DNA from: Phallusia mammillata
Lineage: Eukaryota
Assembly (NCBI GenBank): GCA_965637545.1
Contig: OZ281495.1
Coordinates: 22,444,001 to 22,508,000, forward strand
DNA: 64,000 nucleotides
Reading direction: 5' to 3'
The notes beneath the pieces are model-generated. The model was not told the origin of the DNA and ran no database searches. It worked only from the letters and a program-made list of their open reading frames with translations. The position numbers were made by a program, and so were the translations under genes. Below, piece by piece: positions 1 to 23,300 of the stretch. Numbering within the stretch: position 1 is the first letter of the stretch; every line of letters starts with the position of its first letter.

Positions 1-658
1 AAGTATTTATGTAGCAATTCGTTTCCAAAACAGGATGCAAAGTAAAATCTATTTTAGTTTAAAAAGCACGTTTCTGGGAGACATTGCGGAGCAGAGAAAC
101 ACTCTTATGGCGCCCCAAGTGTCAATTTTTTGGGGAAAGTCCGCAAATGGAAAAATGATTAACTTCCCAGGGACCAGTTTGCTCATAGCACTGGTCTCCA
201 GAAGGTCAGTTTTTAAAATAATATGTCATAGTGATTCAAACTGTTTTTACGACACAAAATTTTATTAATTGCATATTTTCGGTACAATCGGGCAGATGCC
301 TTGTTGGTTAGAAAATGGGACTGATCTGGTTTTTCACAAAATTTTTCTGATGTGATAAAAACGTCATACAGCAATAGTGAAGTCATAAAGGCATTTTAGT
401 CATTACATTTGGCAACCGGCAAGGAGGAAAAGATAGCGTGATCGATTTACGTCAACTCGCAACTTTTGAGTCAAAAGTGTATTTTTGTGATTCTGGATCG
501 GACTTAAATTACTATTGGTACACGAAGAAGCCTGTTTTGGTTTGTGGTCCTGATTTTAGAATGACATGGTCTGCTGTTAGGCGAAATAGTTTATAACTCT
601 GAGTTTAGTTGCTCAAAGTTCGGTTTAAAGATGTTAAATTAACATGATAGATACCATG

Positions 659-712
659 CAGTGGTGGGATTCAGCCGGCTCGCACCACCACTGTCTTTTA
701 ATCCCACCACTG
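659..712. repeat. 54-bp inverted-repeat element (miniature or collapsed hAT-type MITE)
   Basis: CAGTGGTGGGATT (659-671) and its exact reverse complement AATCCCACCACTG (700-712). Flanks ataccatg / tcatcatg match only partly, so there is no clean TSD. Confidence 0.5.
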
Positions 713-1229
713 TCATCATGTTGATATAGATTACGACCTCCCCTCTTAGTCCAAAACTTTTTTAATTATTAAAACGGATTGTAAATAGATTAATAAATCT
801 TTCTTGTAGTAAAAAGTGCGTTTTGGCTACCTAAACAGTTTTACAGGAAAAAAAATACTAGATTAACTGCTTTGGGTATAAAGAACAGTTTTGTTTGTTA
901 CGTTTTCGCTATACTTCGAAAACGAACAGATTATTTCTGGTGGAAGGTATTTCAGGTTTTGTAATCCAGAAGAAATTCGATAAATGGCAACACACAAATC
1001 CCACAACGCGAAAAAATGAACGAGGGCGGTAATGACGCACGAAAGATGCGTGCGTTCGAGGGGCCATTTAGAATAAGATTGAGCACTAAGCGGGAACGTA
1101 CCACCACGACGTCTGTAAGGAATTTGAGTCAATTCGTTTAGATCTTATTGTATTACCATTGATTTGGGCAACAAGTGGGGCGTCTTGCTAGCGAGCTCCA
1201 TTTCTGGATCTTTCGTCAATAGCATTCAA

Positions 1230-1280
1230 TGACGTGCCTTGTGTAATTATGTAACCGTCAGGCACCGGGTATATAAAAGG
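1230..1280 (+). promoter_or_regulatory. Proximal promoter of the chromogranin-like gene: CRE-like site, homeodomain core and TATA box
   Basis: TGACGTGC at 1230-1237, TAATTA at about 1245-1250, half-CRE CGTCA at 1256-1260, TATATAAAAGG at 1270-1280, about 160 nt upstream of the ATG at 1441. Confidence 0.6.
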
Positions 1281-1440
1281 GGGAACCTTGAATCCATTTG
1301 GTTAAAGTGTTAGTGTGCAGAGGGTTATCTTAGAGAGATGCGAAAAATGTCCTTGGATTGTGCTTAACAGTTTAGTATTCTCAGGTATTGAATAAAACAG
1401 GAATCATAACAATAGGCTGTTGATTAAAATTGTACAAAAA

Positions 1441-4400
1441 ATGGGTACTGGAATGTTTTTATATGTAATGTTATTGCTTGGAATCACCGCTGCAGGTAAA
1501 AAATGTGCCAAATATACCGATTTGGCTATCTTTGTTTTGTAAAATAGCGATGTGCTGAGAATGCGTGTTCAAAAGAAGCGCGGATTTGATGTTATACGGA
1601 ATTAATCCTCGTTAAATATTAATGGAGTTACGTGTTCCGAAAAGCAGTTTATCTCTTTTATCCATTAAACACTTTTCACAAGGCAGAGTTTATGATCGGA
1701 AATACTACATGTCATTAAAAGGATAAAAAACATTTCTGTATCCCAGAAAAACTTCGTCCGATTATCTGCGGCAAATTAAAATGGTTTTTACGCGTTGAAA
1801 AACATTTCGCAATATGATCAAACAAATTATTAATATGTACATTTCAGTTGTGTGTGTATGTGGTTCTCATGCTGTCTTAACCAAAGATGAAACAACATCG
1901 ATTTGAGGTTAAAGGTGGTGAAATATTTAAGGAGTTGCGCCGATGTCGCATATGTATTGGGTTTTAATCAACGCATAATCAGGAAAAAAATCAATATATC
2001 GCTACAAGGAGGGCTGCGTTCCACAGCTGCCGCTTGTGCCTGCTGTTGAAAAACTGACAACTTCAGACAAATAGGCCTAAAGATTTTTGTGTTTATTGTT
2101 TTTTAAAAGATTGTTTGATTTGTCCTTCTTTTGCCAGGTTTGCATGCCAGTCCTTTGCCAAAAGCTTCGGATGTCCCAACTACCGTAGCAAATGAAACGT
2201 TAGAAACTGAAAATGATGACACGCAAAAAACAAACAACGATGATGCGGTAAATCTGTGTGCGATGTTCAACCTATTTTGTTAAGACTTATTTCGTGGTTT
2301 ATCAAATGCTGTTTCATCAAAATGTCAAGTATTTCAAGAAAACTCACCATTTGCACTCGTTGTGCTCTTCAGCAATGCAACGCAAAAGCAAAAACGGTGT
2401 TAAAATTAAAAAATATAATAATTGGCATATCGACCAAACACGAATTATTTTTGGTGGAAAGAGAAATTCTTTCGGTGGCAGCAGGTGCGTTAATTTTTAT
2501 GCTGTGAGGTAATAACGGCAGCTGGAAAGCGCGGGATTAAGGTATAATTGTCGGAATTCTTTTATGACGCGATTGGACACATATAATAGAGTGCCTTGTG
2601 ACGCTCACACCGAAGTTATTTTCGAGACAATGTTTTCCTCAGTGACGCCAAACATGCTTTGTTGTACCTTATCCTAGTTTGGGTATCGTCGTGTTCATCC
2701 ATTTTTGTATTTTTATCAATAGACACTTGACTGCATCATGGAAGTAATCACAGTAATGGCATCGGGAAGTGACGAAGCAATGTCGGCCACGTGCAAAACG
2801 ATGCTGGGTTCGTTGCAAGAAGACAACATAAAGATTGGTAAGTGCACTTTAGGACTAAACTGAGCCACACGAAGCTTATTTTGTACACAAGCTATCCGAT
2901 CCTAGCCATGAATAAATCAATATCGGTATCGTGTTTCAAAGAACAACCAGCCACAAAGTTGCCGACAACCGAGAAGAGCAAAGTCGATCTACAAACCCAA
3001 CTTCTCGATCTTACGTCACAGTTGCAAGGTGCACAGGGCAACGATGCTCGATCTAAAAGTGCTGACGAAAATGCAGAAGATTTGATTGATGTTAAAAGAA
3101 ATATGCCTGTGGCCGTTGAAGGTATAAAATCCTAAAAATAAAAATCTCAAAAAGATGATCATATAATATCTCAACAAAACTGTTATAAGTTATGACGTCT
3201 TATTAATTGTAAAGTTTATGTCATATTTAGATGACGAAGGTGACAACACTCTACCCGAAAAGAAAGCACAAATCTCTCAAGGGTCTGGTAGGTGATAAAC
3301 AGCTTTGTGATTGTTGTTAGAAGATAAAGGTGTTTCGACAATGAATGCAATCGATTATTGTAATTACTTGGGTCGGTGATCGATTGTGATTTGAAGAGGG
3401 TTTTCGATCGTGTTGTTGGCATGACTATTTTCTAAACTCAACTAACGAAGAATAAAACAATTTCCATTTTTATTAAAAGTGCAAAGTTCATACTATCGCA
3501 TGAGTTTTTATACAATTGTTGTAATAGATAACTTTGACGAGGAAAAAGGCGACAGCAGATTGGATGAGGCTGAACCATTCATGACCTCTCTGAATTCGGA
3601 CAGCGACGAGTTTCTAATAATTCCACTAAAATACCTTCAAAAGCAAATGCTCTCAACAAGTGAACAACCAGAGGAAGCCACAAACGACCAAGAAGAGGAG
3701 TTCGATTCTGAAGTAGCTCCAGAAGGTCAGCCAAACATATTTTATGATGCAAAATTGACCTATTCGTCAAAATGTCTAGTGGTTGACATGGGGGTTACTC
3801 ATCGTTTTCAACATCATCTAGTTCATTAATTATGAAGCGCTTTTCATTACAGCGTCGGCAAAGTCAGGATCTAATGCACTTTTTTACAAGGATTGTGCAA
3901 AAAAGTCAAACAAACATTAAAACCGCCAATAGTAAACGACCGGTTCAAATAAAATCAGCCTTTTTAACCTTTGAGCTTAACAAAAATCTGAAGGTTTATA
4001 CATTATATACACAGCAAACATAGACGAGGGAAGGGAAATTAACAGCGCCGTTGACAATGAGAAAGCGGAGGAGATGGACGAAAATAACATTGATGAGGTA
4101 GGTCTCGGGGGTACTGTGGATCAATGCATCCATATAATTTATACATCTTGTTCCAGCAGGTCACTAATTAACCAGCCTGTGCGCGCCGATATTCGTGCAT
4201 AATTTAAGCGCAGTAAATCACTGTCCGTGACGTGCTACGTGCCAATGACCTGTGGCTGGTTACATTCCAATTTACTGGTCTGTCCCTTAAGTGGACCATA
4301 TGTCATGTACTTAAAAATTGCAAATACTACGCAAAGCTTTATGGGAAAAAAAGATGTGAGTGTATGGTTTGGTATTGTTGTATATTACGTTTCTCGGGTC

Positions 4401-5716
4401 GACAACAAGACAGATCTTTATTAACTTGAAACAGTAACGATTTTTGAAGAGCTAACTGCCAGTCATGCGTAGCATTGTCCACTTTCCATCGGACAATGGG
4501 AAACTTAAATTATTGATGTGTTTTGCGTTGGCCCGATGTGTTTGATACAAAGACGTCCCATCCTAATCGTAAAGTCGTTTCCACGTAATCTCGAAGTCAG
4601 TATGAAACATTGATTTGTCGAAAGTTGCTACCAGCTGGGATGTTTGCTTGATCATTACAATGACATTTTGGTCAATGTTCATTTCTTTTTGTTTGAAGGG
4701 AAATCCGCAATACTGCTGTCATCGACTTCGGTCGAAATTGATTTTTTGTCTGATATGTCGCATTAGATCAAATTCGTGGAGTAACATTAAATAATTAACT
4801 GCGTTATGAAGCCGAAACAGATCACGTTAGACGAGTACATTGTTTTCTATAGTTTAATGTCACGCCCTATCAGGGCTGCCACTCCTTGGGATTTTTCCCG
4901 AGATCTTGGGATTTCAGTGCTGAGCTTGGGATCTTGGGAAAAACTTTTTAAACCTTGGGATTTTTTGAAATTATCCGTTTAATACGTTTGAGATACAATT
5001 AATACTATTGTGGCGAACAAAAATTATCCTTTTGCAAAAATCATCTTTTTATGTAATTGCGTAACAGTGCTTCATCACATTTGTGTTTAAAGCCGTGTAA
5101 GTTTATTGAAATTCCCTGTCAAAACTAGTGAGTCAGGCCAGTACTACAGGCTTTTCGATGTGTCATGTGCCAGTAAAAACAAATGTCCAAAAAAAAATTT
5201 TTTTTTCTTTTGTATTTTTCTGGTATTTCTTATCGCCTTTTCAAAGGTTCGTGATGGCTGGGACCTGGTGTAACTATAAAGATTATGTTTGCCTGCTCCA
5301 GCTAGGATTTAAACTGTGTATTTGCCATTTTTTTGTTATCTTGGGATTTTGGACAAACCTTGGGATTTTTGGTGAGGGAACCTTGGGATATCTTAAAATT
5401 TTCAGTGGCAGCCCTGCGCCCTATTGATTGCTCTCAACGATTATTTTGCAAACAGTAGCCTACTCTTTAGTTCTATTTTAGTACATTAGTTCTCCTACGA
5501 AATTACAGATTATGCTATTTACAAAACCTGGAAATAGGGTTAAGTACAGACGTAATGTATTTCACCTCTCGCACGCCCTCATACGGATAACCAACTTTCA
5601 TGCATTGTCTTCAGGACCGCTTGGATGCATTATTTCGTGTTGAAATGGATATTTCGAGACTTAGTGAGGACCTAAACCGACTAAAGACCAACAAGCCAGA
5701 AGAATCGGCACATTAA
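1441..5716 (+). CDS. Chromogranin A/B-like (granin) acidic secretory precursor, 296 aa, 8 coding exons
   Basis: Exons 1441-1495, 2138-2247, 2723-2837, 2942-3121, 3231-3287, 3528-3725, 4024-4097, 5615-5716; all GT-AG, 891 nt, open frame. Signal peptide MGTGMFLYVMLLLGITAAGLHA. The only two Cys form a loop: TLDCIMEVITVMASGSDEAMSATCKTML (cf. CgA VMKCIVEVISDTLSKPSPMPVSQECFETL). 70/296 residues are D/E. KR and KK dibasic sites. C-terminal amphipathic helix DRLDALFRVEMDISRLSEDLNRLK (cf. CgA DQELESLSAIEAELEKVAHQLQALR). Gene model confidence is high; family call is somewhat lower. Confidence 0.82.
4871..5416. mobile_element. hAT-superfamily MITE, 546 bp, in intron 7 of the chromogranin-like gene
   Basis: 13-bp TIRs CAGGGCTGCCACT / AGTGGCAGCCCTG; perfect 8-bp TSD CGCCCTAT (4863-4870 and 5417-5424); repeated subterminal CTTGGGAT motifs at both ends. 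Confidence 0.92.
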
Positions 5717-7366
5717 TATAGACCTACATCAAATGTGTTGCTTTGTAAATTATCCATATTTCGCCGTTTGCAGTTTTTCTAGTCGCCCGCGTTTGTGGTT
5801 GTGTCGTACTGTGACCGTGGAATACAGTATTTGTGAATGCGCACGCAGATTTCTACACACTGCTGATGATTGCTTGTTTCTGTATTGTTCGTTGAAGGTT
5901 GCTCAATTTGATAAAACAGTTTTATTAGTGAAGATGAACATAAATTCATAACGGGTCAGCCCTGGAGCGTTCATGCAAATCAGCGATCACTTGCCGTATG
6001 GGAATTCTCGGTGACCGGTTGATTCGGTATGACGCCTTCAATGGGCTGACACACTATGAATTTTATTAGTGTTTATGCTTCATGGTTTGGTCACCCAAGG
6101 AAGAAAACCTCAAAGCTACATTAAGGTTTAAAAATAAGCACATTTTTCCTACCAATTGTGGTCTGACATACTAACACTCGCGAAGGCGTTAAAAGGGTTT
6201 TATTAAGAAAATTAGTAAACGAAGCGAAGCGCGATACCCTTGCAAGCGAAAGACGCAAAAAGTTTGTACACTTAAAAGTGGAGGAAATAACATGAGAACA
6301 AACGACGGCAACAACAATAGAACAAATGCAAAACGCAGCCACCCTGGGATGGGAAGCTGAAACTTGCAAAAGACCAAGTCGCCCAACTTTCAGCTAAAAA
6401 CAACGAAATCTCCGAAAGTAACTTTACAAAATAGGTAAGATTTTGGGTTTCCCCGTAGGACGGACATAAAAGGAGATACATTTGGCCAGTGGTGGCGGAC
6501 TTTGCATGCAGAAGGTAGATGTTGAACATTTATTTCGGGATATGTTTGCTTATTAAATTCGCTTAACGCGAGTAAGGTAAAAGGTATCGTTGATGGTTCG
6601 AGTTCAGAAGGTGGTTTGCAACAGGTTGACGGAGACAAACACGCTGGATTGCACGTGGCTGGACATGGCACTAATAGAATCGCTGGGCTTCCAACATAAA
6701 AAACTTCAATCGCATGTCTATCGAGCTCGGCATCTCACATTTCGTAAGGTGGCGCTGTACAAAAAAAGCAACACGGCGATCACGATGTAATGTAAGGGTA
6801 ATAATAGGGTACGTATGCGCGCGAAAGACGTCGACTACACTAGAACGTGTCAAGTTTCGGCATCACGCAGGCACTTTACGCAAAGTTCGTGATTGGCAGC
6901 GGCATAGGTCAGAAAACAACCACAGGTGTGACAGAAAAAGTACAAAATCAAATTTGAACTTAAATCGCGCGCGTCGGCCCTGGTCTGGCAAATTTGCATG
7001 GAAGCTGTGCTATGGTACAGAGTGGGAGGTAAACTGGTGTTTGTGTACTGCACTTAGTTCGTCTGTTCGCCACATTGGGTCAATGGCACTCGGACGAAAG
7101 CAGAGCGGGGAAATTTTGATTGACAGCCGAACTTAGGACCCGATCTGGCCGGGCGAGACTGCTTGGATTGTCGCATAAAACCAACGTGTACAAAAACGAA
7201 ATGAACTTTTAGTCGTAAAAAGCAAACGCCTGGATGGGGGCTGAGCGGCGAATTGGAGCAGCAAAATGAAAAGCAGTAGTATAAAAGTAACCAACGAGTA
7301 ATGCAATACAAAACGAAACCAGCCAAAAAACGAAATCAATTAAAACTTCAATATTCGCAGTAAAAA

Positions 7367-7394
7367 CACGTCACACGTCACACGTCACACGTCA
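7367..7394. repeat. Perfect tandem array (CACGTCA)x4, i.e. (TGACGTG)x4 on the minus strand, directly after the ERF stop codon
   Basis: Copies at 7367-7373, 7374-7380, 7381-7387, 7388-7394; the ERF TGA is at 7397-7395. Confidence 0.9.
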
Positions 7395-10300
7395 TCAGTC
7401 CCACAGCTGTTCTTCGTCATCAACGTCGACGTTAACATCTTCGTCAGAACTCAAATCCGACTGACGATTCGAAACTTCGGTCTTTGTGGAATCTTTTTCA
7501 CTGTCTGGCATCACCGAACCACTGTCCACACTCATTTGTTCGTCATCATCCTTCGATGACGAAGTTGTGACGTCACTTGTCGATTTGTCACCTTCCGGGG
7601 ACGAAGATGCCTCGGATTTGGATGCGTGCTGGCGTTCCTCTTCTTCTTCTTCTTCGTCGTCGCTGTTTCGACCCAGAATATCGCGGATGCTGTGACCGCT
7701 TTTCTTGGCGCGGGCTGGAGGTGGTGGGGGAGGCTGGAAGGGGAAGAATGGACGCGGCAGCAGAAAACCTGAAACAGTACAGTGATTGACATATGCGTGA
7801 CTGTAGAGACGGACCAAAACACTGTAAGTGTTCTGTCAAGCACTAAGCACCCTCTACAAAAACTTCTCTTAAGCTAATATTACGTCACAAATACTTAAAA
7901 TCAGGGTAGTGAGAGCGGCCGTATATTTCATCTTCTTGCCTATCATAAAGTAATGTCTGGAAGCTTTTCTGGCAACTACTAAGCTAGATATTGATACTTG
8001 GGCGAATATTTAGGTGCTAAGAAGCGGAATAAAATTGTAAAAAAATATTGGAAGAAAACTTTAAATAGTTGTTTTAAAGGTTAGCCCTTAAAGTTTTTAG
8101 TTCATTATAGTTCACTTGCCATTGTTTTCCTCACAAGTTGAGGATAGATTTGCTTTGATGAATGTTCAATTAAAGTAAGGCATACCTGGCGATGAGCTTG
8201 GATATGGAAAATTAAATGCCGATGGTGACTTGGCGATAGTGGAAGGCGAATTGAGGGAAAGACAGTTGCCGAATCTTTCACTCACAGCGTCGCTTTCATC
8301 TTGATTGTGAGACTGTAAAACAAAAAAGTCAAAATAATCAAACTAATCTGGACCTATGGCCCATGGCCCGCTGGTTGAGTAACACTGCCTTAGCGGAAGT
8401 AAACAATCTAGGAAGCGCAAGAACGTGCCAAAAGCAGCTGGGAAAGAGGGAGAGGTTACAGGTCGCTTCCCGGAAAAGTGCGATGTGTGGGTGAGATTTA
8501 TTGCCTACTGAAAGGTTTCTTAGCCGCGGTTTCGTTCCGTGCGCGACCGACGCTTGCTCATTTATTCATTCATTCATATGACGCGCTATAGGAACAATGA
8601 AATCGCCGACTGGTGAAATTCAATAGTCGCTTTAGTCGCTCAACTAACGTACACAATATGATATTAATTGAAATATGCGACCGTAAACATCCGAACCCAC
8701 ATTGTTATTTACGTATGACTAATATGCCGACACTAAACACGGATATATGAACGCATACCATGAATCGCAGTTTGGGAGGCTTTCCTTGTGGTGCCGGTTC
8801 CAGTGACAGTTTGCGGGAAGATGTTTTTCCGTCTTTACTTCCTTTTGCGCCATCGTCGTCGTCAAAGACGTTGTCGCACTTGCCGCTTGGCACCGTCTGT
8901 GCATCGTCCGACCTGCTTCTTTCGTTTTTCGATTCACCTTCCCGCCCTTCCGACTTGATTAGCTTGGATGTGCATCCGTGGTCAGAAATACTGCTACACC
9001 AAACAACAAAAGTATGTCAGATAGGCGTGTTAAATTCAGCAAATGCGAAGTATTTTTAAAGGACTACATATTTCACTTCAGAATAGTGAAACCAAAGGAA
9101 AAGGTCTTTATAAAACTGTTAGCATGCAACTGCGTTAGCTGCTTTGCTAGAACAATGTGAAACTTCGTATATATAACTTTTACAGCTATTCAACCAAACT
9201 TAGACAGTTTTCTATTTACTAGTTTGTTGTTGACACAAGTACGTTGTAGTGCACACATTTTTGCACAAACACACTTGCACGAAGCGCAGACGCCAAAAAA
9301 ACGGTAAACAAAGGTAATGCTTTTGCTTATTCACAGCATTATAAGCTTTCATTGATTCTCACCTTCGTTTCCTACTTAGCGGCGGCTTCTGCAACTTCAG
9401 CACGCTCGAGGGTTGATTGCTATCAGCATGGCGGTATGCGCCCGGAGACAGCAGCATCGATGGAGTATGGGGAGTTCCCGGGGTGTGCGGGGTAAGGAAC
9501 CCGTTCTGTGTGTTGCTCTTCACGTCGTTGGTCGGCGGCTTTGCTGCGGGTGCTTCGCTGGATTTTCCGTGCGAGTCAGATTGCGGCCTGGCAACGCAGA
9601 AAAACGGGAGTCAAGTGGGGGGAGCATCGACACGCGAGCAGCGAACCTGATACCTCATGCCAGCGCAATTCAGTTGCATGGACCGTTAAGTGCAGATTTT
9701 TTTGTACTCAGATAATAGATATATGCATACGTAGGTATGAATTATAAACGCCCCATCTGTGTATTGATTTGTATTTGTTAGCGGTAAAAAGGCTTTTGCC
9801 ACACGTCAGAGCCTATGCACGAGATATTGAGTTTCTGTCGGTAAGTTATCAACTCGGCTGCCCTATAAGCTCCATCCACGTCAAAGCTGGAAAAAAAACT
9901 CGTCACATTGATCATCAACTCCACGTGAGCCAGCAGGTGAGATTTATTATTGCCAATTTCTCTGCATCATCACCATACTGACCGTTTCGAAAATTCTCCC
10001 AAAGAGTGTATTTTTACATTTTAATTGCGTTTGCAATGTGGGAGAGATTTGCTTCAGCACATGAAAGCATATGCAGATGTCAAAAATTCAAATCTATTCC
10101 CAATCCATTTGATTAGCTCCAAACCCTAGCTTAATAAGGTGTAATAAGACTATGGTCCAATATACAGATCTGTTGATGCCAACACAACAATTGAACAGTG
10201 CAAGATTAAATCTTTAAAGAATAACGCAATGACAACAACATACCCGTGATACGCCTTTATATCATCCACGTCGAACGAAAAGAAGTGGCGTCGACGGTTT

Positions 10301-13116
10301 GGATTCAACAAACCCGGACTTGCGGTTTGAACGGGGCTGAAGGTGGGTGAAAAGGTGGGGCTGGGAACGTAGTTGATATATGTGGGAGTGGTGGGTAACG
10401 ATCCGGGGTACAGAGGCAGGGGGAAGCGGAACCCAGTGGGGGTCGAAGGGGCGACTCCCGACGGCGTGGCGCCTGAATGCGCACTTGGGCTGTCTGCGCA
10501 TAAACAATGATTAAGTGCGACGAACAAGGCAAATGTGTATTGCTAATGAATTTTAGGGCGGAGTGCGGTTAATTAAGCGATGTCAATCATATAAGTAGGT
10601 ACACATATATCCTTGTTTGACTCCAGCCTCAAAATTGTTTTGCTACCACATTAAGATACTAATGCAATAAAATATGGCAAAGTATAAACAGTACGTTTAA
10701 ATAAATAAGCTATTGCTACCAGGCATAATGTATAAACGAGTATCGCTCTTCCAGCAGATTGTATTATAATTGTCCTGCAAGATATGCCATTATTCTGATA
10801 AAGAAACGTCGATTATTTACAATAAAAACTGCTGGAAGAGCAATACTCGTTTATTACGTTCAAATTTTTAATTAAAATTCGGCTTTTAACAAAGTAGAAT
10901 TTTTAACATGCTAAACAAAAATACCACAGCCAATAAATTTTGTACCATGCAAGTTCTTCACATGCAATCAATAAATTTTTCATAACTTACTAGATACTTG
11001 AGAGAGAAGAGCAGCAACACTTGGTGGCATCACTCGGTGTCGGTAGTGACCTGGAATGACTGATGGGTGACATCTGTAGCGCACAGCACCCACTAGTGGA
11101 CTAATCGGTGCAGTCATCATTCGAGCAACATCTTCACTTTCTGATGTAGCTAGCGATTCTTCACTTCCATCACTTACAGAACCTCGAAGAAGTCGGGCGG
11201 CAGCTGCAAACATAGGGAATAGGAAATGAAACACTACAAAAAAAATTTGGAAAATATTTTGGGAAGCTTTTAGGTTTTACATTACATTTTGTTTTTGTTT
11301 GGTTTTGGAATATTCAAAGCAATGTAATGCTTGTATGGTCCCGAAATTAAGCCTGGATAAATCAATTCTAGCAGGGGAGACAATGCTTGAAATACTAATT
11401 TAATTTACCCAATCTGTGAGGAGCCACAACCACTGGTGATTGCAGAGGAGATTCTTGCAAGGTATTGAACACATCATCTTTGTTGTCAGAACGTGATGTT
11501 CCATCTGTTTATAAAAAATTTTTTTACTCAGTTGTTGATTTCAGTGTGTTGGTCTAATGAGGTCAATTGGAGTTTCAACTCTTTTTAACTTTCATTGCCA
11601 AACTGTATCAAACATTTTTGACATGTTTACTTACTTTGCCTGGCTACAGCCCCTGACAGCAAGAGTGACTGCTGCTGTTGGGCTCTCCTTGTTAGGTCAG
11701 CCATGTGAGCTGTCATTGCTGCAGCTGCTGCACTACCTTGTGACATCTATAGTAGCACAAAAGCGTGGTTTAGTCACTGAAATGCACATTCTTGTGTGCA
11801 CAGCAGTTTTATATCTTGAAGTGCTGTTGTTGACACCAGAAAGAGTTCGACACATAATTTCCCAGTGCAAAGATGTAAAACTATTAAGTGCACAAGTTAT
11901 AAGCAAAGACTCCATTGATTCACTAAACTTCAGTGAAATGTTGTTAAGTTACAAACAACAGACGAAATCTTAGGTAATTGTTTCTACAACTGATAATATA
12001 TTACATTTTACATGGTACAAAGTTGTTGGTATGGTTTAGTATGTTCTCTACCTGGTGATTAGGATGGGGTAATGGTGGTGTGAGGCCTATTGGTGCTGCT
12101 AATTCACGGAAGTTGAACTGGTAGGTGAACCTCTTCCCCTTGGTTTTGTACAGAATACGTTTGTTGTAGTAATACCTAAAATTGTAAGTTTAAATTCAGA
12201 TTCAATGTTGAAATGACTTAAAAACACAGGCGTTTTAGGACATCACACACAATAGTGAATGGAAAGGCAAATCTCCTTACCCCTTTCCAAGCAACAGTTT
12301 AAACAAACCTATAAAACTACAATCACCCTGAAGGCATTGGGAGAATACAATTTTAACATAAAGATGAATAGTTTTTAAACGCACTCAGCCAGCATACATG
12401 GGTTTAATTGTTAGTAATAGAACAAAGATCAAACTGGCAAACAAACCTTAATGCCCTACTGAGCTTGTCGTAATTCATGTGGGGTTTACATTTACGCATT
12501 CCCCACAGCTTGGCCACTTCATCTGGATCTTTAATCACAAACTCTCCATACTCTCCTTGCCAGGCAATTATATCCTGAAAAGCAAAGCAACCATGTTCCA
12601 TATCTCATTTTGTGCATGTTGTCCTCATAGACAAACAATTTTCTCCATCCAGACACATATGTATGGTACTAAACAGGTTTAATTTTCATGTTTTCTATAC
12701 CTGGTATTGTTCATCTTGCAGTAATTCAAGGATAAAATGCCATAACTGCACTTGTCGACTGCCAGGGGCTGATTCAGATTTAAAAGCCCACTCTGGAATA
12801 GTTTGGTTATTTCCTGAAAAAAAAAACAATTATCAGGTTTTACTACAAACAATCAAGGATGAACTTACTTTCTAAACAAACACTGTGTCCATATGCAGAA
12901 AGAGATAGCACATTTTGAAGAATTGAAGATATTAACTTATAAATTCAGTATGCCAAAAATCATGATTTATAATGTTTTAAGCACCAAATAGTAAATATAC
13001 TTTTTAACTTGAAAATTAAATGTTTAAACATGAACTATACCTCCTCTCCAAACATTAGAACCAGGTGGCCTTTGCTGTTTGCATGGATCTACATAAGCAC
13101 AATGCATTTTCAGCAT
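7395..13116 (-). CDS. ERF: ETS-domain transcriptional repressor of the ERF/ETV3 class, 700 aa, 12 coding exons
   Basis: Exons (minus) 13116-13041, 12813-12701, 12574-12447, 12175-12052, 11746-11635, 11504-11409, 11233-10991, 10493-10244, 9587-9363, 8993-8759, 8312-8186, 7768-7395; 2103 nt in frame. ETS domain [100 protein letters not shown]-specific blocks [50 protein letters not shown]. In-frame stop upstream of the ATG. Confidence 0.93.
8358..8387. mobile_element. Terminal fragment of the CAGTGGTTCTCAACC MITE family in an ERF intron
   Basis: GGCCCATGGCCCGCTGGTTGAGTAACACTG resembles the right end of the 36000-36300 element (GGGCCATGGGCCCTGGTTGAGAACCACT). Confidence 0.45.
10732..10854. repeat. 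26-bp inverted repeat with 71-nt spacer in an ERF intron
   Basis: ATAAACGAGTATCGCTCTTCCAGCAG (10732-10757) versus CTGCTGGAAGAGCAATACTCGTTTAT (10829-10854): 25/26 complementary. Confidence 0.85.
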
Positions 13117-14373
13117 TGGATTCTCTTGGCAAGGTGTTCTTCAGGTAATGTTTTCAATGTGATATTTCACTGAAGGTTACAACATAACTTCAAAACGAAA
13201 ATAATTGCCAACAGTTGCTGCCCTGGTTTTAAAAACTTATCCCAGCCTGCAAAAAAAAATCGGAATCATTGATGAAAGCAAAAAGATCCAACTGCAAAAT
13301 TTGACATCTGACTTCCAGCAAACCGTACAAACTCTGATAATCTTTATGAAGGTATGGAAATCTAACCACCTTTGTGACAGGAAAAAACTTGCAGTAACAG
13401 AACCTACCAATGACTATAGGGACTGAAACCAATGCCATGTTTTCAAAAATAGGCTGACCTCAAGTTGTGTCCTTTAAAACTATTTTTCCCTGGTGGCAAG
13501 TTTACATCCATCAAGTACATTGATCCTATCGTCATTTTAAGTGATGGGACGATTTGCGTACTTTCCCGGTGCCTATTCCCGGAAATGTGTGGTTTTCTCT
13601 GTTCCTCTGCCTGTCGAATCACTATCTTCCAGTCACATGGCAACAACGGGAAACACATTACTTCTGCTGCTGTTCTGTCCACAGGGCTAAAGTTTGCGCT
13701 TCAATGACCGCAGTTACGGCTGCGACAACGTTAAAGCACACGAGGCCCAAATTGGCACCAATGACAGACAACTGCGCGTGACGAGACACTCGTTCGCGCG
13801 CGGTAAAACCTGACACTAGTTAATGAAATCGGTACTGGAAAAAGCGCGAGATCTCGTCGCTCGATTACAATTCCTGATATCGCAACACGACCCTTTTCAG
13901 CGAGGGAGAAAATAGATCGCCCCAGCGGGCGAAGGCTTACCAAGCAAGATCAGGACAAGCGCGCTTGCGATGTACAAACAAGGCCTGCTTCCCCCTTTTG
14001 TTGCCAACACGGCTAAAGAGAGCTGTGTGCCGGTTTCCTAGTTCGCATTGCTACAACGACCTAACCTTATTTCCAGGCGACCCCGATTTCCGATTCTGTG
14101 TGATGGTTTGTGCCGCAGCGGGATATTGGAACACTACTCGCTCTGCGCGACCCCACGTCTGTTTGTTTATCTCCGCTCCAGGTCGGGTTACCATTGTGGC
14201 AGAGCTGAAGACTTTGCCAGAAAAATATTCCCACACCCGCACAAATTGTTTGTGATACCTGGCTAAATACATATCTACCAATATTATACCTCAACTGCTC
14301 AACCGCATAAACTAACTGCGGACATCGGTGCGCACGATGGTAGTTTGCCATAGAAAAATACAGGCGTCTGTCA

Positions 14374-14392
14374 GTCTGTCTGTCTGTCTGTC
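14374..14392. repeat. (GTCT)n microsatellite
   Basis: gtctgtctgtctgtctgtc, preceded by an imperfect unit. Confidence 0.6.
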
Positions 14393-17300
14393 ACGCAGCA
14401 TACAATGGACAGTCGCATATTAAACGGGAGCAAGTGCGCCACACGCAAGGTCATACTCGCTAGACATATTCGCTCGCCCGTAACCAAGCAACGGGTGGAA
14501 TGCGGCCGGAAACTTGACTGAGTTTCATTCACGCTAAATGCCCTAGCGGCGTTTCCCCTGGCCTTCCACTGAAGCTTTATTAGCAGGAAATAACTCTCTC
14601 CACTTGAGATCTTTTTACTGCGACTGAAATCGACAGCAACCATGTGTTGCCAAAATTACTAGCTCGTACAAAGGCGAGGGGGGAAGTTTCAATGTGCTGA
14701 ATCATGTGCGGCTTTGGCGACAAATCCTCGCTCTACTCAAAGTAAATACAGCCGCGCCAACTTTGAGGCAAAGGGCGAATGGATCCACACGATATCCGCG
14801 AACAAAAAAGGTAAGGAGCAGTATCGTCGAGAATCGGGGAATCACGCAATGTGACGTGTGTGTATATATTCATTGGCTGCCCTTCAAATAAAATTTGGGC
14901 CGTAGGAATATTTCAAACAAACATTGGGATCTATTTTAATCACGAGCGGTGGAAAAAAGCCACGCAACCGGGACCAAGCGTCGGCGACACCGAGGTGGCT
15001 CGCTTACTCTGCACTTGAAAGGTATCAGCCGATGGATCGCCTTGTTTTGAGTACATTATCGCGGTCGCTCGACGTCTAACCAAAATAGCAAGGCGTGTGA
15101 GAAACTTCAAAAAGACTATGCGACCCACTGCGCGTCCCATCTCCAACCCATGACATCCCATCGGCAGGACAGCCTTCGCAAGCAAATTCCTGTGGCGCGA
15201 AATCGTGCGCGCTAACGCTCCTCATCACAATGGCAAATGACTCACGCCGCAGCACAAAGCGATCGCGCGGCCCAACCAATCTGAAAACGCGGACAAGAGG
15301 GAGGGCAAACAAAGATTAAAGCGCGGAAGCTTTCGACGTTTGGTCAACAGCACAAGAATGGAGTGACCAAGCACTCGAGTCACTGCCTCTTCGACATATC
15401 CCACTTCCTTATATTGCGACATCCGCGAAACTGAAACTAAGGAGGCCAGTGCAAAACAGTTGATGATTAATAAAACCTATCACAATTTCGCGCCCTCATG
15501 TCATACCAACCGCTTGTGGAATTGCAAGTCGCGGATTCGGGTGTCTTAATTGGTAATTCCAACAGCAGTGAGACACCAGCGGCGCGATCGTAAAGTGAGA
15601 GTTGCAAGAAGCCGCCGCTCTCCGAACGCAGCAGATCAAACACTGTTAAGCGCCAATTGCGACAGATAGGAGCGCAGAAGGACAACAAGCCATGGTGCGC
15701 GGGCGTCTGGGAGAAATGGGTCAAGACGAGGGAAACGAGCCCTTTATGGCCAATCGGGGTTGTTTTCTTTTAGCCGAATGGGGTACTGCGAAAGCAAACA
15801 GCAAGTGTTGAAGTAGCGCATATCTGCTGCGACGAACTTTGAACGGGATAAAAGCCGCTGGAATTTCCAAAACAGGGCGTAGCTGTGTTTGCTTAGTTGT
15901 CACCTTTTGACACTTATTTTTTTGCCAGTGACCTTAGCGGTCGTTCGGTTTCTATAATCTGGTCTGACTTTAAGCGCGGTTCAAGTACAAGTTTCCGACG
16001 TTTAACAAATCACACTAACTAACATGCGAACCCAAACGTACAAACTACAGTTATCACTTATGAGCTTTCGTCCAATTAACGTTGACGCACAGCACGACAT
16101 TTACATTACCCAAAGCCAAGACAGCTGCGCACGAACGTGACCTGATATTTTTCAATACAACACAATATACATGGAAACCGAATTACGCCAACGGTAAATA
16201 CATCAAAACAGGTGACACAGTACGTGGGACATCGAAAATAACGAGTGGACCTCAGTTTCCACAGTCAAACCGGTGGCAATCAATTGTGCCTCTATCGTCT
16301 GACAAACGCTCAAAAACAAACAACCAACTTGCCAGCACACAGGCGCACGTTAAGCATAAGAATTCATGCCTAACACCCCACAGGGTCAACACTACAACAC
16401 GCCCGATAAATTAAAATGCGCCTACGCAGAAAAAGCGGAAAAAGTATTTGCTTGGCTAAGGGTAAAATCTTTTCAAGCTGCTTTTAAGCCCGGTTGGCTT
16501 GTGCAATCATATTTTGTGGTCAGTTCAATAGCAACATTAAAAAAAGACTAATAACAAGGACAAAATAGCTGTTAATCAAACGCACAGATAGCTTTCCAAT
16601 GTTCCCAATAATCTGACCTCGGAAATCTTAAAGATGGCTGGATGGTAACTTTCCAAGGGTTAAACAAAAGAATGTGTCCTTTGTTCTCGACATCTCACTT
16701 CTCTTTCTGGGCCACCAGAAAGTTAAGCTGTCTCCTGCGTGTGGTATTTCTGATTTGCATGTATGTCACTGCAGAAAATAGAATCTGTGACCAACAGGCC
16801 GCCGGATTCGTGATGGCATTGCAGAGCCGCCTTCTCGGAAACAGATTAAGAGTTGAGCCACACGCCAGAACGGCATCACGTACACTTGATAAGGGAACTG
16901 CACAGGGTCGTCCCTATCTCTGTCCATGATTGCCCTCACACATCTATAGCAAATAGTGGAAAAAGCAGCAGGTGTTGCTTTCGATGAACAGGTGGCATGC
17001 ATAATGGAGGATCAACGGCTTAACAAAGAGCTTCACTTTTGTCGTGTCAAATGAACGTATGCGTGTGATTTGCACTAAATTAGCACATGTGGTGAAAAGT
17101 GTTTCTCCACTGTACAAAACTAACACTCTTAGGGAGAAGAAAGTCTGAATTTCCTGTTTGAAAACATATGCCTGACCCTCTCATTTCATACTTTCTGATC
17201 TGAAAATAATAAACCAGAAGAGCTGCAAAGCTACTAGCTTAAAATCTTGCACAGATTTTAGATTCACTGTAAACGAAAATCAAAATCTTGGGATTTCGGC

Positions 17301-20300
17301 TAAAAAGGTGGCGTAAAAAGTCTCCACTATGTCTCTGTGCGTCATGTCCTGCTGGTTCTAGACAGAAGACGCGGAAAAGTTGTCTCAAAGCGATGCAGCA
17401 CATTGAGTTCATGAACCCGGCGACGAAACGAATTATTGCCGTGACGTGTCGTCTCGTGTTATGAAATGCTAATCAATTGTGTAATAAGTGGGGAAAGGGT
17501 CCACTGGCGGACGCCTGCGACGACCCTTGTAGCACTGCAATCCCGGGAAATGGATCTTTCCGCAAAGCAATACAAGAAGCGCGCAACGGCGGATGGCGCT
17601 TGTCGGTCGGAAATGGGATCGACTGCACATGACCACGGCGATGTCGGTGCAAGGTAAGAAGCGTTCGGAAGCAGCACGTGCTCAGGCGATGAGTTTAACG
17701 AAAATTGCCAATCAACAACGTCTGACCTTATTTGGCAACATTTGGATTTCCTAATGGTTTGACAGCGATGACGTAATTTCAATAGCATTGCCCTTTAAAC
17801 GGCTTATTCCAGTCACTGTGTACACAAGGCTGACAACCTGGTAGTTATTTTTAAATCTCTTAATAAAACGACACCTGCCGCTTTCAATATTGTTATGTTA
17901 ATATCTCTCATTGACAACTACACCTGTTACTATCGACAGATTAATTAATCCTACAAGATGCTTCCAAACCCTTACGGCTCCAAAGACGCAGCAAATAACA
18001 ACATATCGAAAGCAGGCGAGGACCTGTAACAACAGGCAGTCCTCTGTTGTTCACAGAAGACTCCCAGGCACCAACGCTCAAAAAACGGTGTGCTTGTTCC
18101 ACTTGCTGTGTTTTTTGAATTAGACTTGCAACAAGATCGCCAGCGTGGCAGTAACTTAAGGCGATCTGTCCCCTGTGAACGACATTCAAAATCGCCATGC
18201 GTGGCATTCTTGATATGCGCAACACTTTACCGCCGATAATATAATGCGATGCGAAAGCCATGAAAACAAGTTTGTTTTGCACACCTGGGCTTTGTGCGCT
18301 TGCAAGTGAACATATCGTGTTGCTAAGATCGCGAAGTTAAGCTCTAGTTTGCACTGCCGCTTTTGGTTAACCATTTGTCACAAAGCATAACACCACTGTA
18401 TCAATTTTACACGGGAAGGAAATGAACCCAATCATGGAAACGAAAAAAATCGTTTTCTATGAATAAATGTTGTTCAGAAGGAGCTGCATTTCTAATGTGG
18501 ACCATCACGGAAATCTTGTAGCGATTTCAATGACATATTACAAAAATACCGTTTGCAACCCAAAAAATGCAGTCTGAACTGTCAAGCACATGGATTGAAA
18601 TCAGACCCAGATTGAAACACACTTAGATCTGTCTAATTTACAAGTGGCAGCAACGTGTGAGATCACATGTAATCATTAAGGTTCCAACATCTACGAGTTT
18701 GGGTTTGCGCTTGGTGTCGTCTCTAATGCCCATCAGAACAACGACCTGACCACATTAGACCGTGATTGACAAGTTGTACGCACGTCACCGCTAATAATAC
18801 GTTCGGCGACAGCCACCAACGTGACGGAATTTATAAAACGAATTGGCCGTTGCTCGTTTGATGCTCCACCAACGACTTCTATATCTATACAAGCGATTAG
18901 GATCCCACATTTGCCCTGGTGACCGCCGCGTTTGAGAAAATGCCGTCGGGTTAGGGGTTAATAGCGTTCCGCCCTTTACTAACGTGTGATGTCGGATTAG
19001 TAAGGTGGTTAATGTACGAGTGAGTATGGAGAGTGTGTTACACACTAGGGACCGCTAATCTATTTTAACTTCTTTTGACTGTATGCAAACAAGTACTGCG
19101 GTTTCCCAAGAACACTTTGTCTTAAATTCAAATTCACATCGTGCATCGAAAGTTTTACATTGCCATCGAAACCGTAAAAACAATGTCCTTTTTTCTGTTT
19201 TTATTAAAACCAAATGAATCAACGTCACATTAAAATAACATACCGTAGATGTGTCGTGCAATCGATGTGAAAGTCGAAGAACAACCAAATTGCCGTGACA
19301 AGGTTTAATTTCGGCACAAGTTTACAATTTCCCTACAAATTCCTTCCTCGGGAGCAGGAAACCGCAGCATAGGGTCGGCACAGGTGAAGGTAATTGCCTT
19401 CTTATCATAATAAGCACATGGATGGTACCGAGACACGAAAATTGCTGCTTGCGCGAAGCATCGCGTGGTCAATTAAATCGCGACTTCGAAGTTGGCAAGG
19501 CAAAAACAATTGAGCAATGTTCGCGATCAACAAGCGGCTATCGCACAAATTACCCAAGCATAAACGACCGCCTTCGCGTTTCAACAGATCGGCGCGGTCG
19601 TAATTAGGCCAAACGCGAAAGTCCACGACACTTGCAATCAGACAATTTTCCTCAATTACACCACAAATAGTGACCGGTAAACACACGTTAAATCCGATTG
19701 CTCGCGCGCAAAACAACCACCAACTTGTCAACGTTTTGGGATGTTGGTGAAAACATGTGAAAGCAACCATTGATTACGAGCTATGCGTGGTTTAAGGATT
19801 ATCAAGCAGTGCAGCTTGCAACGGATTAGAATCATTTAGAGTGATCCTGTGAAGAATAAAAGATCGGAGAAAACGGTTAAAAAGATTAGTTCCAAAAGGT
19901 GCGAAGCCTCTTAAGACTAAACCGGATAAAACAAAGGAGCGGATCGAGGATAATCGGTGCTTGCCAAGAGATTTTGGCCTCTTCTAATACTCACCGTCGA
20001 TAATTTTTAATTCCATTATTGAGGACAAGTTGAAAGTATCCATGCTTAGATCAAGCCGTGTTGTCATGCGCTTACATTCAGGAGGGCAAAAATACCACAA
20101 GTATCGCATTTGAGCCCTACACAAAAACCACTTTACACCTGCATGTGTGACATGCGTTTTTTTTCGCATTTTTTTCGCATGTTTAACGTTTTTGTGGCTT
20201 TCAGTAAAGTGTCGCAGGTTAACAAGTGGATGCGCCTTACACGATGCGTTGTTTAGTTGACGCATCAGGGTGGAACACTGGAAAAAGTTGAATTTCGGGT

Positions 20301-23300
20301 TTCCCTTGACATTTGTGGCCACAAAGCGCGTAAAACACATTCGTAATACTGACTCTACTGAGTGCCTCGTATTTGGGCTGGAACAATTCTCAAATGCTGC
20401 TCTATTAATAAATGTAAAAAAACTCACCTCACCAATCACGCTAATGAGCGTTTGTGTTCTGACACAGTCATCAAATTTGTACAACACAATATATCTGAAT
20501 TATAATTCATACCTATTACCAATGATAAAAATTGCTTACGGGGAAGTCTGATTAATAAATACATCGCTTAGCAAACTCTCAGAAATTCTAAAATCAATTA
20601 TAATACAGCCATTCCTTTCCTGTGATACTGACGACAACACATCGGGTAAATCTTTCCATGAGACGCCGTGAGTTTGTCAGGCCCTATTATTTTCCATTTA
20701 ATGCGGACTCGCCACCATTTCTTCAGAGCCCGGGGCGATGCCGAACCTTCTTTGTTTTCGTTGCGGCGATGTCCGATACGCGAAGTCTTGTCAGGTCTAG
20801 ACGTTTACTGTCACGTTTTGATAGCGCTCCATTAAGTTTTATGGACACACAAACAAGCGGCGCGATGTGTATCCTGGATTGTTCACGAGCGCATGCAACC
20901 GCATATTGCTATGTCACTTCGAAGGTAAAAAACTGTTCTGACCTTTCTTAATCCGTCCTTTCAATCTTGATAAGTGTATGACGCAACTCCGATCGTTTCA
21001 GCAACGTATCAAATCGCAATACACCACGACATCCCGACGATCAGTAGAAGTAAATACCCAGTGATTGGTGATTGTCGGAGTGTGCTCATTAAATCCGGTG
21101 AAATACTTTTGATGAGCACGTTCCAACAAGGCCCGCGGAACGTTGTTGAGTGGCGCCAATCGCGATCGGAAAAACATTCGCTTTCCAGGAACGCCCGACT
21201 CGACTGAGCCCACGCTCGGTCGTCCTGTTTTTCGACGACTTCGTTGCCGTCGCAACAAGTGAACCGAAAAGCTCGCCAATACACACACAAACTTCTACAA
21301 AATGCTTATGGGGCATACATAAGGTCACCGACAGGTGGTAGCGGTTTTTCGCCGTAAGCCAACATTTTGATAAGCTTGAAAGCGGGTAAATGACGATCCG
21401 CGAGAGACCAAACCCAAAGCGAGGTGACGACAGGGCACACAAAGGCGAGCAACGGCGTGGATAAGGTCGTTTCTCCAAACAGCTTAAAATATCACATTTA
21501 CGGTCAAAGCCGCGTCGTTAGTTTTGATGCCAAAAAAGGAAGGCGGAACAAAAACCTCGCATTCCTCGATACGAATTGCGCGAATCAATGAACTGCCTGT
21601 CCGTATTTACTTGACAAATGCAGCGGCAACTAGCGACTATCGTATATATAATTCAGTTGTTGTCGTTTTGTTTGAAAAAAAGGTATTGTAAACAGCGCTA
21701 ACAAAAACTATTACCACAAATTATTAATTTCTAAAGGCAAATGAAAATATGTTTTTTGTGTAGGAAATACTACGCAATAACAGACATCGGCTACTGCAAG
21801 TTCAAAACTCCCATTATCGGAAAAGGCACAGGACGAAAACAATCTGACAGTCTCGTTGCCTTTCCCACACGGCTCTGGTTCGGGTTAATCTGTGTGTTCG
21901 GGATATAACAGTGCAGCTGCACTTCCTGCTAATAGAACGTCAAATGGCCAAAGCCCTTGTTATGCGCAGTCATCGTAAAATTCAACGATTTTCTCGCACG
22001 TTTTAAGCATAAAATCGCCAGCCAAGATCACTTCTCCTTAAAATAACTTCATAAAATTGCGACAATCCAACTGCTGGCGACCGCGTGAGTTGTTTTGGAG
22101 AAGTCCATTACACACTAACGCACTTGCCGCACGATCGTCAACAAGACGCAGTTGACAGCTTCGGATAACAGTTACCATGCAGATCACATCTTTTTGTGAT
22201 GTAAGCTTGTGCACTTAGTTGAACTGGAGAGCGGGCAGTTCCGCTGTGTGTTGACGCGTTGAAACGGACTTCCAGATCAAACACAATATCACCGCTCATA
22301 GAATATGTCTGTTACAGGCAATTAGCAATCAAAATATTACTGAAACATCCATGTGTACCGTAACAGCGGCGAAATACGGGATTGGGAAGGAAGCGATCCT
22401 CGCAAAAAAACGCTAAGCGCGCCCGGTTGATATCTACTTCCTGTCTGGACGCGTTCACTGTCTGAGTAGCATTTGCAATCTAACAAAAGCGCAGCACTGT
22501 ACCATTGGCATTTCCGACCATTATGCGCCCTGTTGTTGCGGATGTACGGCATCAACGGTAGTCACGCACTGGCCATTTGTACCACCTTACACCTACTACA
22601 TCGTCCCAATGTTTGTCACTATAAGCGGAAGTCCAAAACTGGAGAAAGTTGCCAGGTGCCTCTGCTTTGCCAAACCTGGCCAAATTCAATTGGGAATGAT
22701 GGTTAAATCATCAGAGTGGGCCAAGAATTTGAATTTTGATAGCATTTGATTACTTCCTATGGATGCGCGAATATGGAGTCATTTCGGTTGAATATTACTT
22801 ATGCTTCTTTGTTTGGGCACAATTCAGTGATTGGTCTGTTACAATAACACAAAGTTCAAATTTAAAATTTCAATCATTGAAATTCCAACATTCTTATTCC
22901 TCCATGGTAGTTTATGAATTATTTTTACAACCAGAAACCATACATTTAGCCAAAAAAATGCAGGCAAACACTAAGATGGTTAAAAGGCTACAAATGCAAC
23001 TTTTAAACTTAACATAGTTTTATGTAGATAAGTAAGTCTAGACTATAGAATCTATAGTATAGATCAACAATTTTCAGTCCTAATGACAACTGTCAAAAAT
23101 GGAATGCCATCGTTGCCCAAAATTAATCTGTATTACTCATTTTTGAACATAGCTCATAAGACCAGTTTTTTACCAAAATGTATTGCTTTTTGATGTTACC
23201 TAATGTAACAAATAGCTAGATAGCTACACAAACTACAATACTGATTTTGTTAGTATACTACAACTGCAGGGAATTGGTCCAACAAAACACACCATTTTAA

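Follow-up and report, generated by a model that had tools for sequence, protein, structure and literature searches.

A 64,000-nucleotide stretch of the genome of the tunicate Phallusia mammillata (GenBank assembly GCA_965637545.1, contig OZ281495.1, positions 22,444,001 to 22,508,000, forward strand; hereafter the window) carries at its positions 1441–5716 an eight-exon gene that is probably a divergent homologue of vertebrate chromogranin A/B (CHGA/CHGB), judging from its gene architecture and from the motif of a two-cysteine loop. We also consider it likely, with somewhat more reserve, that the gene is the single tunicate pro-orthologue of CHGA and CHGB and dates from before their split. An initial annotation of this DNA had already proposed chromogranin A/B orthology; the architecture and the loop motif uphold that proposal, whereas support at the level of the sequence is weak.

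A transcribed gene encoding an acidic two-cysteine protein

The gene model was rebuilt by script from window positions 1–7000. It comprises eight coding exons on the forward strand, separated by seven introns that all have GT..AG ends and whose phases are 1,0,1,1,1,1,0, and its coding sequence of 900 nt translates into a protein of 299 residues. Exon structure and phase series are thus the same as in the initial annotation, and the protein length given there, 296 residues, is corrected to 299. Eleven transcript runs of one organism cover part of the stretch, and four of them, originating from three studies and available as assembled contigs, were mapped onto positions 1100–6100. Single contigs of 1045–1082 nt from three runs (X4, X6 and X11) contain seven of seven joints at the exact model junctions, with GT..AG ends, and contigs of a further run (X1) show part of the seven. 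The spliced contigs extend from about 1385 to about 5842, and low-depth X1 contigs lying over introns resemble unspliced precursor. The exons predicted by the initial annotation are therefore joined in transcripts from three studies, and the gene gives rise to a real, spliced and well-represented mRNA.

The protein has a hydrophobic N-terminal leader and is strikingly acidic: Asp and Glu make up 23.4% of the 299 residues and Lys and Arg 8.4%, and the mature protein has a calculated isoelectric point of 4.05 and a grand average of hydropathy of -0.91. It contains exactly two cysteines, residues 59 and 79 (codons 2732–2734 and 2792–2794), which enclose 19 residues. The sequence has two dibasic sites, at KR145 and KK164, and contains N-x-T once and S-x-E twice. 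Of all 18-residue segments in the protein, the most strongly amphipathic lies in exon 8 (residues 271–289, hydrophobic moment 0.62). These values reproduce the earlier description of the protein, which had put its Asp/Glu content at about 24%, given identical cysteine codons, spacing and post-cysteine sequences (CIMEVI and CKTML), and assigned an amphipathic helix to the last exon, where the highest hydrophobic moment is indeed found. Across the window, which has 127,996 codons in six frames, the loop-core motif C-[LIVM]2-E-[LIVM]2 occurs once, namely in this gene.

Gene structure in common with vertebrate CHGA

The exon layout was compared with CHGA genes read directly from vertebrate DNA, i.e., four contigs carrying P0012, a product identical to the bovine sequence (L001–L004), and a locus of the bonefish Albula glossodonta (L005, GCA_019788955.1). 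In the literature searched, we found no statement of CHGA intron phases and no CHGB loop sequence. In the ruminant-type contig L001, exon 3 (94 nt) follows ...cccag and opens with GTG ATG AAG TGC, in phase 0 and three codons before the first cysteine, and it ends in phase 1. Exons 4 (69 nt) and 5 (96 nt) each run from phase 1 to phase 1, giving phases 0,1,1,1 for introns 2–5. For the bonefish, a model was assembled by mapping the N-terminus from the annotation and the C-terminus of ostrich onto the DNA and reading the junctions; similarity to known CHGA sequence anchors exons 1–5 and 8, and exons 6 and 7 follow from open frames and splice consensus. The rebuilt gene consists of eight coding exons of 46, 50, 94, 69, 105, 348, 437 and 81 nt (the last plus stop), all bounded by GT–AG introns with phases 1,0,1,1,1,1,0, and its open frame encodes 410 residues with 30% Asp+Glu. 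Eight exons are likewise reported for human CHGA, the first of which (exon I) encodes most of the signal peptide (PMC5395093).

The tunicate gene and CHGA correspond at several levels. In both, the signal peptide is encoded mostly by exon 1 and interrupted by a phase 1 intron, the bonefish exon 1 consisting of 15 codons plus 1 nt. Intron 2 is in phase 0 and lies exactly three codons before the first cysteine, as in the bonefish and the ruminant-type contig. The number of coding exons and the complete phase series equal those of the bonefish gene. The mature chain contains no cysteines other than the two of the loop, which starts C-I-[VM]-E-V-I, and the middle of the protein is very acidic, hydrophilic and impossible to align. 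Finally, the last intron is again in phase 0, and the last exon begins with Asp and encodes the helix only, over 27 codons in bonefish and 33 in the tunicate, with a hydrophobic register that is offset by one codon between the two and with a short tail following the helix in the tunicate gene. What the initial annotation had stated of CHGA, namely eight coding exons, this series of phases, a last exon restricted to the helix and an exon 3 that starts three residues before the first cysteine, is accordingly seen on vertebrate DNA, the exon 3 start in both the bonefish and the ruminant-type contig.

This intron evidence is independent of protein similarity. Roughly estimated, a proteome should contain by chance a few copies of the loop-core motif with another cysteine at the right distance behind it; adding secretion, the N-terminal position of the loop, extreme acidity and a phase 0 intron lying exactly three codons before it would lower the expectation to about 1e-5 per proteome, a figure reached before exon number, phase series and the helix-only last exon were counted. 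Common ancestry with CHGA/CHGB is thus the best explanation of the data, because the coinciding features are those that define the family and because the introns testify independently of the sequence.

Two observations on public CHGA records were made in passing. The bonefish CHGA gene (L005, positions 10001–21935) is apparently split in the public annotation into a 105-residue N-terminal model, which reads into intron 4, and a separate 312-residue model, which starts inside exon 6; a single model of eight exons and 410 residues fits the DNA. In addition, an 83-residue record labelled as a Mycobacterium tuberculosis hypothetical protein (P0004) is a mammalian, primate-like and perhaps human chromogranin A fragment that matches Pfam Granin. 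It almost certainly reflects host contamination of a Mycobacterium tuberculosis assembly and was excluded from every comparison. Several mammalian exon 3 frames among the CHGA fragments (P0006, P0008–P0011 and P0015–P0018) may likewise be of human origin and were left out as well.

Sequence searches and other points against a granin identity

Most of the observations collected in this section weigh against the assignment to the chromogranins; the placement of the loop and of exon 8 as the best matches of the CHGA termini speaks for it. When each exon peptide was submitted separately to a Pfam hmmscan, no family was returned at E values up to 10, Granin (PF01271) included, and none of the peptides reached the PF01271 gathering score of 25 bits. 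In control scans, the ruminant-type exon 3 obtained 48 bits, exons 3 and 8 of bonefish 24.2 and 19.3 bits, respectively, and exons 5–7 of bonefish CHGA scored nothing. The blank obtained for a tunicate is therefore weak evidence against a granin, and indeed expected, because the profile loses most of its power already within the vertebrates. A HMMER search of 1.84 billion representative proteins with the exon 3 peptide recovered neither a granin nor the gene's own product; two bacterial repeat proteins that it returned were dismissed as spurious, having been scored by summed repeats. PDB sequence searches with exons 3, 4 and 6 yielded nothing meaningful, and a metagenome scan with exon 6 yielded no relative. 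Judged by these searches, no other family is favoured, and none of them alone speaks for a granin. The profile searches that the initial annotation had put forward as a check thus favour no unrelated family, and they leave the exon 3 and exon 8 peptides below the detection level of PF01271.

Vertebrate sequences used as queries were bovine CgA1-76 (Table 1 of PMC9452953), the N- and C-terminal parts of an ostrich protein (P0003) and an N-terminal bonefish model (P0005). The bovine query retrieved 16 CHGA fragments, including open frames of mammalian contigs that read through exon 3, and protein searches with two C-terminal CHGA fragments remained empty. With phmmer, the best alignment of the ostrich and bonefish N-termini to the 299-residue protein is the loop, both cysteines being aligned with one gap. 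A profile built from the bovine, ostrich and bonefish N-termini likewise picks the loop at 5.9 bits, a score reached by 11 of 5000 composition-preserving shuffles (p ~0.002). This similarity is suggestive and would not, on its own, survive a proteome-wide search. Granins have two PROSITE signatures, the second of which, C-[LIVM]2-E-[LIVM]2-S-[DN]-[STA]-L-x-K-x-S-x3-[LIVM]-[STA]-x-E-C, describes the loop. The tunicate loop fits its first six positions (CIMEVI) and the [LIVM]-[STA] pair before the second cysteine (M-S), whereas the middle positions do not fit and the loop is one residue shorter. The likeness to the vertebrate loop is confined to the first six and the last few positions, and 19 residues separate the cysteines compared with 20 in CHGA. 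Signature 1, [DE]-[SN]-L-[SAN]-x2-[DE]-x-E-L, is not matched in its strict form by the C-terminal helix. For the 26-residue ostrich C-terminus, the best ungapped match within the protein is exon 8 (residues 265–289), with hydrophobic residues coinciding at every heptad position; the score is reached by 7–9% of shuffles, and a C-terminal profile of ostrich and bonefish gives no signal against the protein. The resemblance of the C-termini is structural, that of a terminal amphipathic helix, with no demonstrable sequence similarity. Nor does full-length phmmer against the rebuilt bonefish CHGA give a signal, the comparison being dominated by acidic low complexity. Taken alone, sequence similarity to chromogranins is near noise.

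Further points against the assignment concern the gene structure and the locus. The introns that can be placed relative to CHGA are 1, 2 and 7, as introns 4–6 lie in unalignable sequence, and the agreement of the complete phase series has to be read in the light of the bonefish exons 6 and 7, for which open frames and splice consensus were the only guide. In intron 3 the phase agrees with CHGA, but the position is about eight codons farther from the second cysteine. Phase 1 introns are, moreover, common in genes of secreted proteins. The tunicate protein, with 299 residues, is shorter than bonefish CHGA (410) and human CHGA (about 457; PMC5395093), and it has two dibasic sites compared with six in the rebuilt bonefish protein. 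In the bonefish, CHGA adjoins an Ins134_P3_kin (ITPK1-type) gene. ITPK1 is also the neighbour of human CHGA. Among the open reading frames of at least 110 residues in the window, no such neighbour of CHGA or CHGB was recognised; little conservation of gene order is expected between tunicates and vertebrates, and the absence of synteny therefore carries little weight.

Alternative explanations

The gene might instead have no relation to granins and encode an acidic secreted protein specific to its lineage, such as a matrix, tunic or luminal protein that binds calcium. Its likeness to chromogranin would then be due to chance and to habits shared by secreted, disordered proteins, among them a signal-peptide exon that ends in phase 1, a short last exon and exons with phase 1 at both ends. 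Such an origin would agree with the lack of a significant granin match by Pfam, phmmer or a database-scale hidden Markov model search, with the non-significant C-terminal similarity and unalignable middle region, and with the displaced intron 3. We nevertheless regard it as unlikely, since the features that coincide are those by which the family is defined: secretion, very high acidity, two cysteines and an N-terminal loop of about 20 residues opening with C-[IV]-x-E-V-I. Habit would also have to put a phase 0 intron precisely three codons upstream of the first cysteine, to arrive at as many coding exons as in CHGA and at its seven phases, and to create a last exon entered in phase 0 that encodes the helix only, all as found on CHGA DNA, and roughly estimated, fewer than about 1e-5 such genes would be expected per proteome.

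Convergence on function is a still less probable account. A granule matrix protein that is acidic, aggregates and has a sorting loop could have arisen independently of CHGA and CHGB, and both the composition and architecture of the protein, which suit the granin mode of action, and a sequence similarity close to noise are compatible with this. However, convergence leaves unexplained why introns near the loop and the terminal helix agree in position and phase, and why both loops start with C-I-x-E-V-I. Least probable of all, and highly so, is membership in another secretory-granule or prohormone family, i.e., secretogranin II, III or V, VGF, proSAAS or a neuropeptide precursor. In favour of it are the acidity and secretion of the protein and its two dibasic sites, but none of its exons matches a Pfam family, those of secretogranin III and 7B2 included, and there is no PDB match. 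Repeated peptide units flanked by dibasic sites, which would point to a neuropeptide precursor, are absent from the protein, and we know of no other granin with an N-terminal two-cysteine loop of this kind. Three of the four outcomes that the initial annotation had named as speaking against its proposal were examined, namely transcripts that fail to join the exons, a rival family favoured by searches, and CHGA phases other than those it had stated; none of the three was found. Descent from a common ancestor with CHGA and CHGB is hence the reading followed below.

Features of the locus and of the surrounding window

The features of the gene are listed in Table 1. Upstream of the coding region, three cAMP response element (CRE) half-sites lie within 47 bp, immediately 5' of a TATA box. 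The window holds four such clusters, including this one, and the arrangement is too common there to count as evidence, so that its role as the promoter of this gene is only suggestive. Vertebrate granin promoters are cAMP-responsive, and the CRE/TATA arrangement is reminiscent of them. The TATA box predicts a transcription start near 1300, whereas the longest contig begins at 1385, directly after an AG at 1383–1384 (ttctcag/gtattg). Spliced-leader trans-splicing is known in tunicates, and this AG may be a spliced-leader acceptor, in which case the contigs would end where the common leader begins; letters of a spliced leader were not seen in the transcript contigs.

Table 1 Features of the chromogranin-like gene, with positions in the window
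Feature	Position	Strand	Remarks
Putative core promoter	1214..1276	+	TGACG/CGTCA (CRE half-site) x3 at 1214, 1230 and 1256; TATATAA TATA box at 1270
5' untranslated leader	1385..1440	+	Contig starts at 1385, 1393 and 1402
Exon 1	1441..1495	+	Model and transcript contigs; 3' end in phase 1, within the signal peptide
Exon 2	2138..2247	+	End of signal peptide, acidic N-terminal stretch, the N-x-T site; 3' end in phase 0, three codons upstream of Cys1
Exon 3	2723..2837	+	Two-cysteine loop, CIMEVI...CKTML; ends in phase 1
Exon 4	2942..3121	+	Hydrophilic, Leu/Gln-rich stretch, Lys-Arg 145-146 (3094-3099); phase 1 to 1
Exon 5	3231..3287	+	Short, acidic, Lys-Lys 164-165 (3260-3265); phase 1 to 1
Exon 6	3528..3725	+	Middle region, acidic; matches neither Pfam nor PDB; phase 1 to 1
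Exon 7	4015..4097	+	Acidic; ends in phase 0
Exon 8, coding part	5615..5716	+	33 codons and stop; C-terminal amphipathic helix (about 5615-5686) and short tail
3' untranslated region	5717..5842	+	Contig ends at 5821-5842

Intron 7 contains a repeat-rich insert (4866–5420) with many copies of the motif CTTGGGAT(T/C)TT in two blocks about 400 bp apart. Reading by eye, we noted a 13-nt inverted repeat flanking the insert (CAGGGCTGCCACT / AGTGGCAGCCCTG); a repeat finder set to 14 nt reported no inverted pair around it. Low-depth contigs from two runs match the insert in part and then continue into unrelated sequence. The insert is probably a dispersed element resembling a miniature inverted-repeat transposable element.

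Downstream of the gene, a perfect tandem repeat, (ACACGTC)x4, occupies 7366–7394, and a dense cluster of CGTCA motifs extends over 7369–7571. Both sit in a stretch of higher G+C content (0.44–0.45 over 6001–10000), the long open reading frames of which have no Pfam match. Among ten open reading frames scanned, the one Pfam match came from a frame of 158 residues at 26703–27179 that contains leucine-rich repeats (LRR_4, LRR_8).

Predicted mode of action and implications

By analogy with vertebrate granins, the leader would take the protein into the endoplasmic reticulum and be cleaved near residues 19–22, and the two cysteines would then form a disulfide loop. The acidic body would bind calcium and aggregate in the acidic, calcium-rich trans-Golgi, while the loop and the terminal helix would mediate membrane association and self-association. 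Chromogranins are known to be heat-stable, to bind calcium with low affinity and high capacity and to aggregate in response to pH and calcium. In this way, the aggregate could be steered, together with co-packed hormones and amines, into dense-core granules in neurons and endocrine cells. KR145 and KK164 may be processed by prohormone convertases, and cleavage at the first site would free an N-terminal fragment that bears the loop. Vasostatin and beta-granin, which are N-terminal fragments of CgA, provide the model for the predicted cut at KR145.

Reviews present chromogranins A and B as proteins of vertebrates, papers that deal with their distribution do so as well (e.g., PMC10330821), and in the literature searched we found no report of a chromogranin A/B from a tunicate, amphioxus or other non-vertebrate. 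The gene is probably a very divergent member of a known family, the range of which it would extend to the tunicates. As it lies below Pfam detection, its automatic name would probably be 'uncharacterized protein'.

The family probably predates the vertebrates: a tunicate member would place the origin of these granule-matrix proteins earlier than the vertebrate genome duplications. If the gene is indeed the single pro-orthologue of CHGA and CHGB, a chromogranin gene with the eight-exon layout, N-terminal sorting loop and C-terminal helix was already carried by the last ancestor that tunicates and vertebrates share. In that case, vertebrates would not have invented the granin-based formation of dense-core granules, and the few-exon structure of CHGB would be derived. 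At 299 residues and with two dibasic sites, the protein would offer a small and tractable version in which the contributions of loop, acidity and terminal helix to sorting and granule formation can be dissected, and ascidian cell atlases would gain a candidate pan-neuroendocrine marker. The gene would also serve as a worked example of homology that is kept in intron positions after sequence similarity has dropped below the detection level of profile searches.

Comparison with known granins

Among the granins, secretogranin V/7B2 is the only one that the papers on distribution cite from outside the vertebrates, e.g., as Sp-SecV of the sea urchin (PMC6209648). It is a marker of regulated secretion that predates the vertebrates; as a sequence family it is unrelated to the gene described here, and there is no Pfam match between the two.

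Relative to CHGA, the tunicate gene has an exon 2 that is longer by 20 codons, which places the loop about 20 residues farther from the N-terminus. The conserved helix encoded by CHGA exon 4 (chromofungin region) is not clearly recognisable, and, unlike in CHGA, no Arg-Arg precedes or follows the C-terminal helix. CHGB, a protein of about 650–680 residues, is encoded by five exons, one of which holds the whole middle region. Its terminal domains are homologous to those of CHGA; the loop starts C-I-I-E-V-L, and the second cysteine opens the sequence C-R-Q-V-L. The corresponding CKTML of the tunicate protein resembles this sequence at least as well as it resembles the C-F-E-T-L of CHGA.

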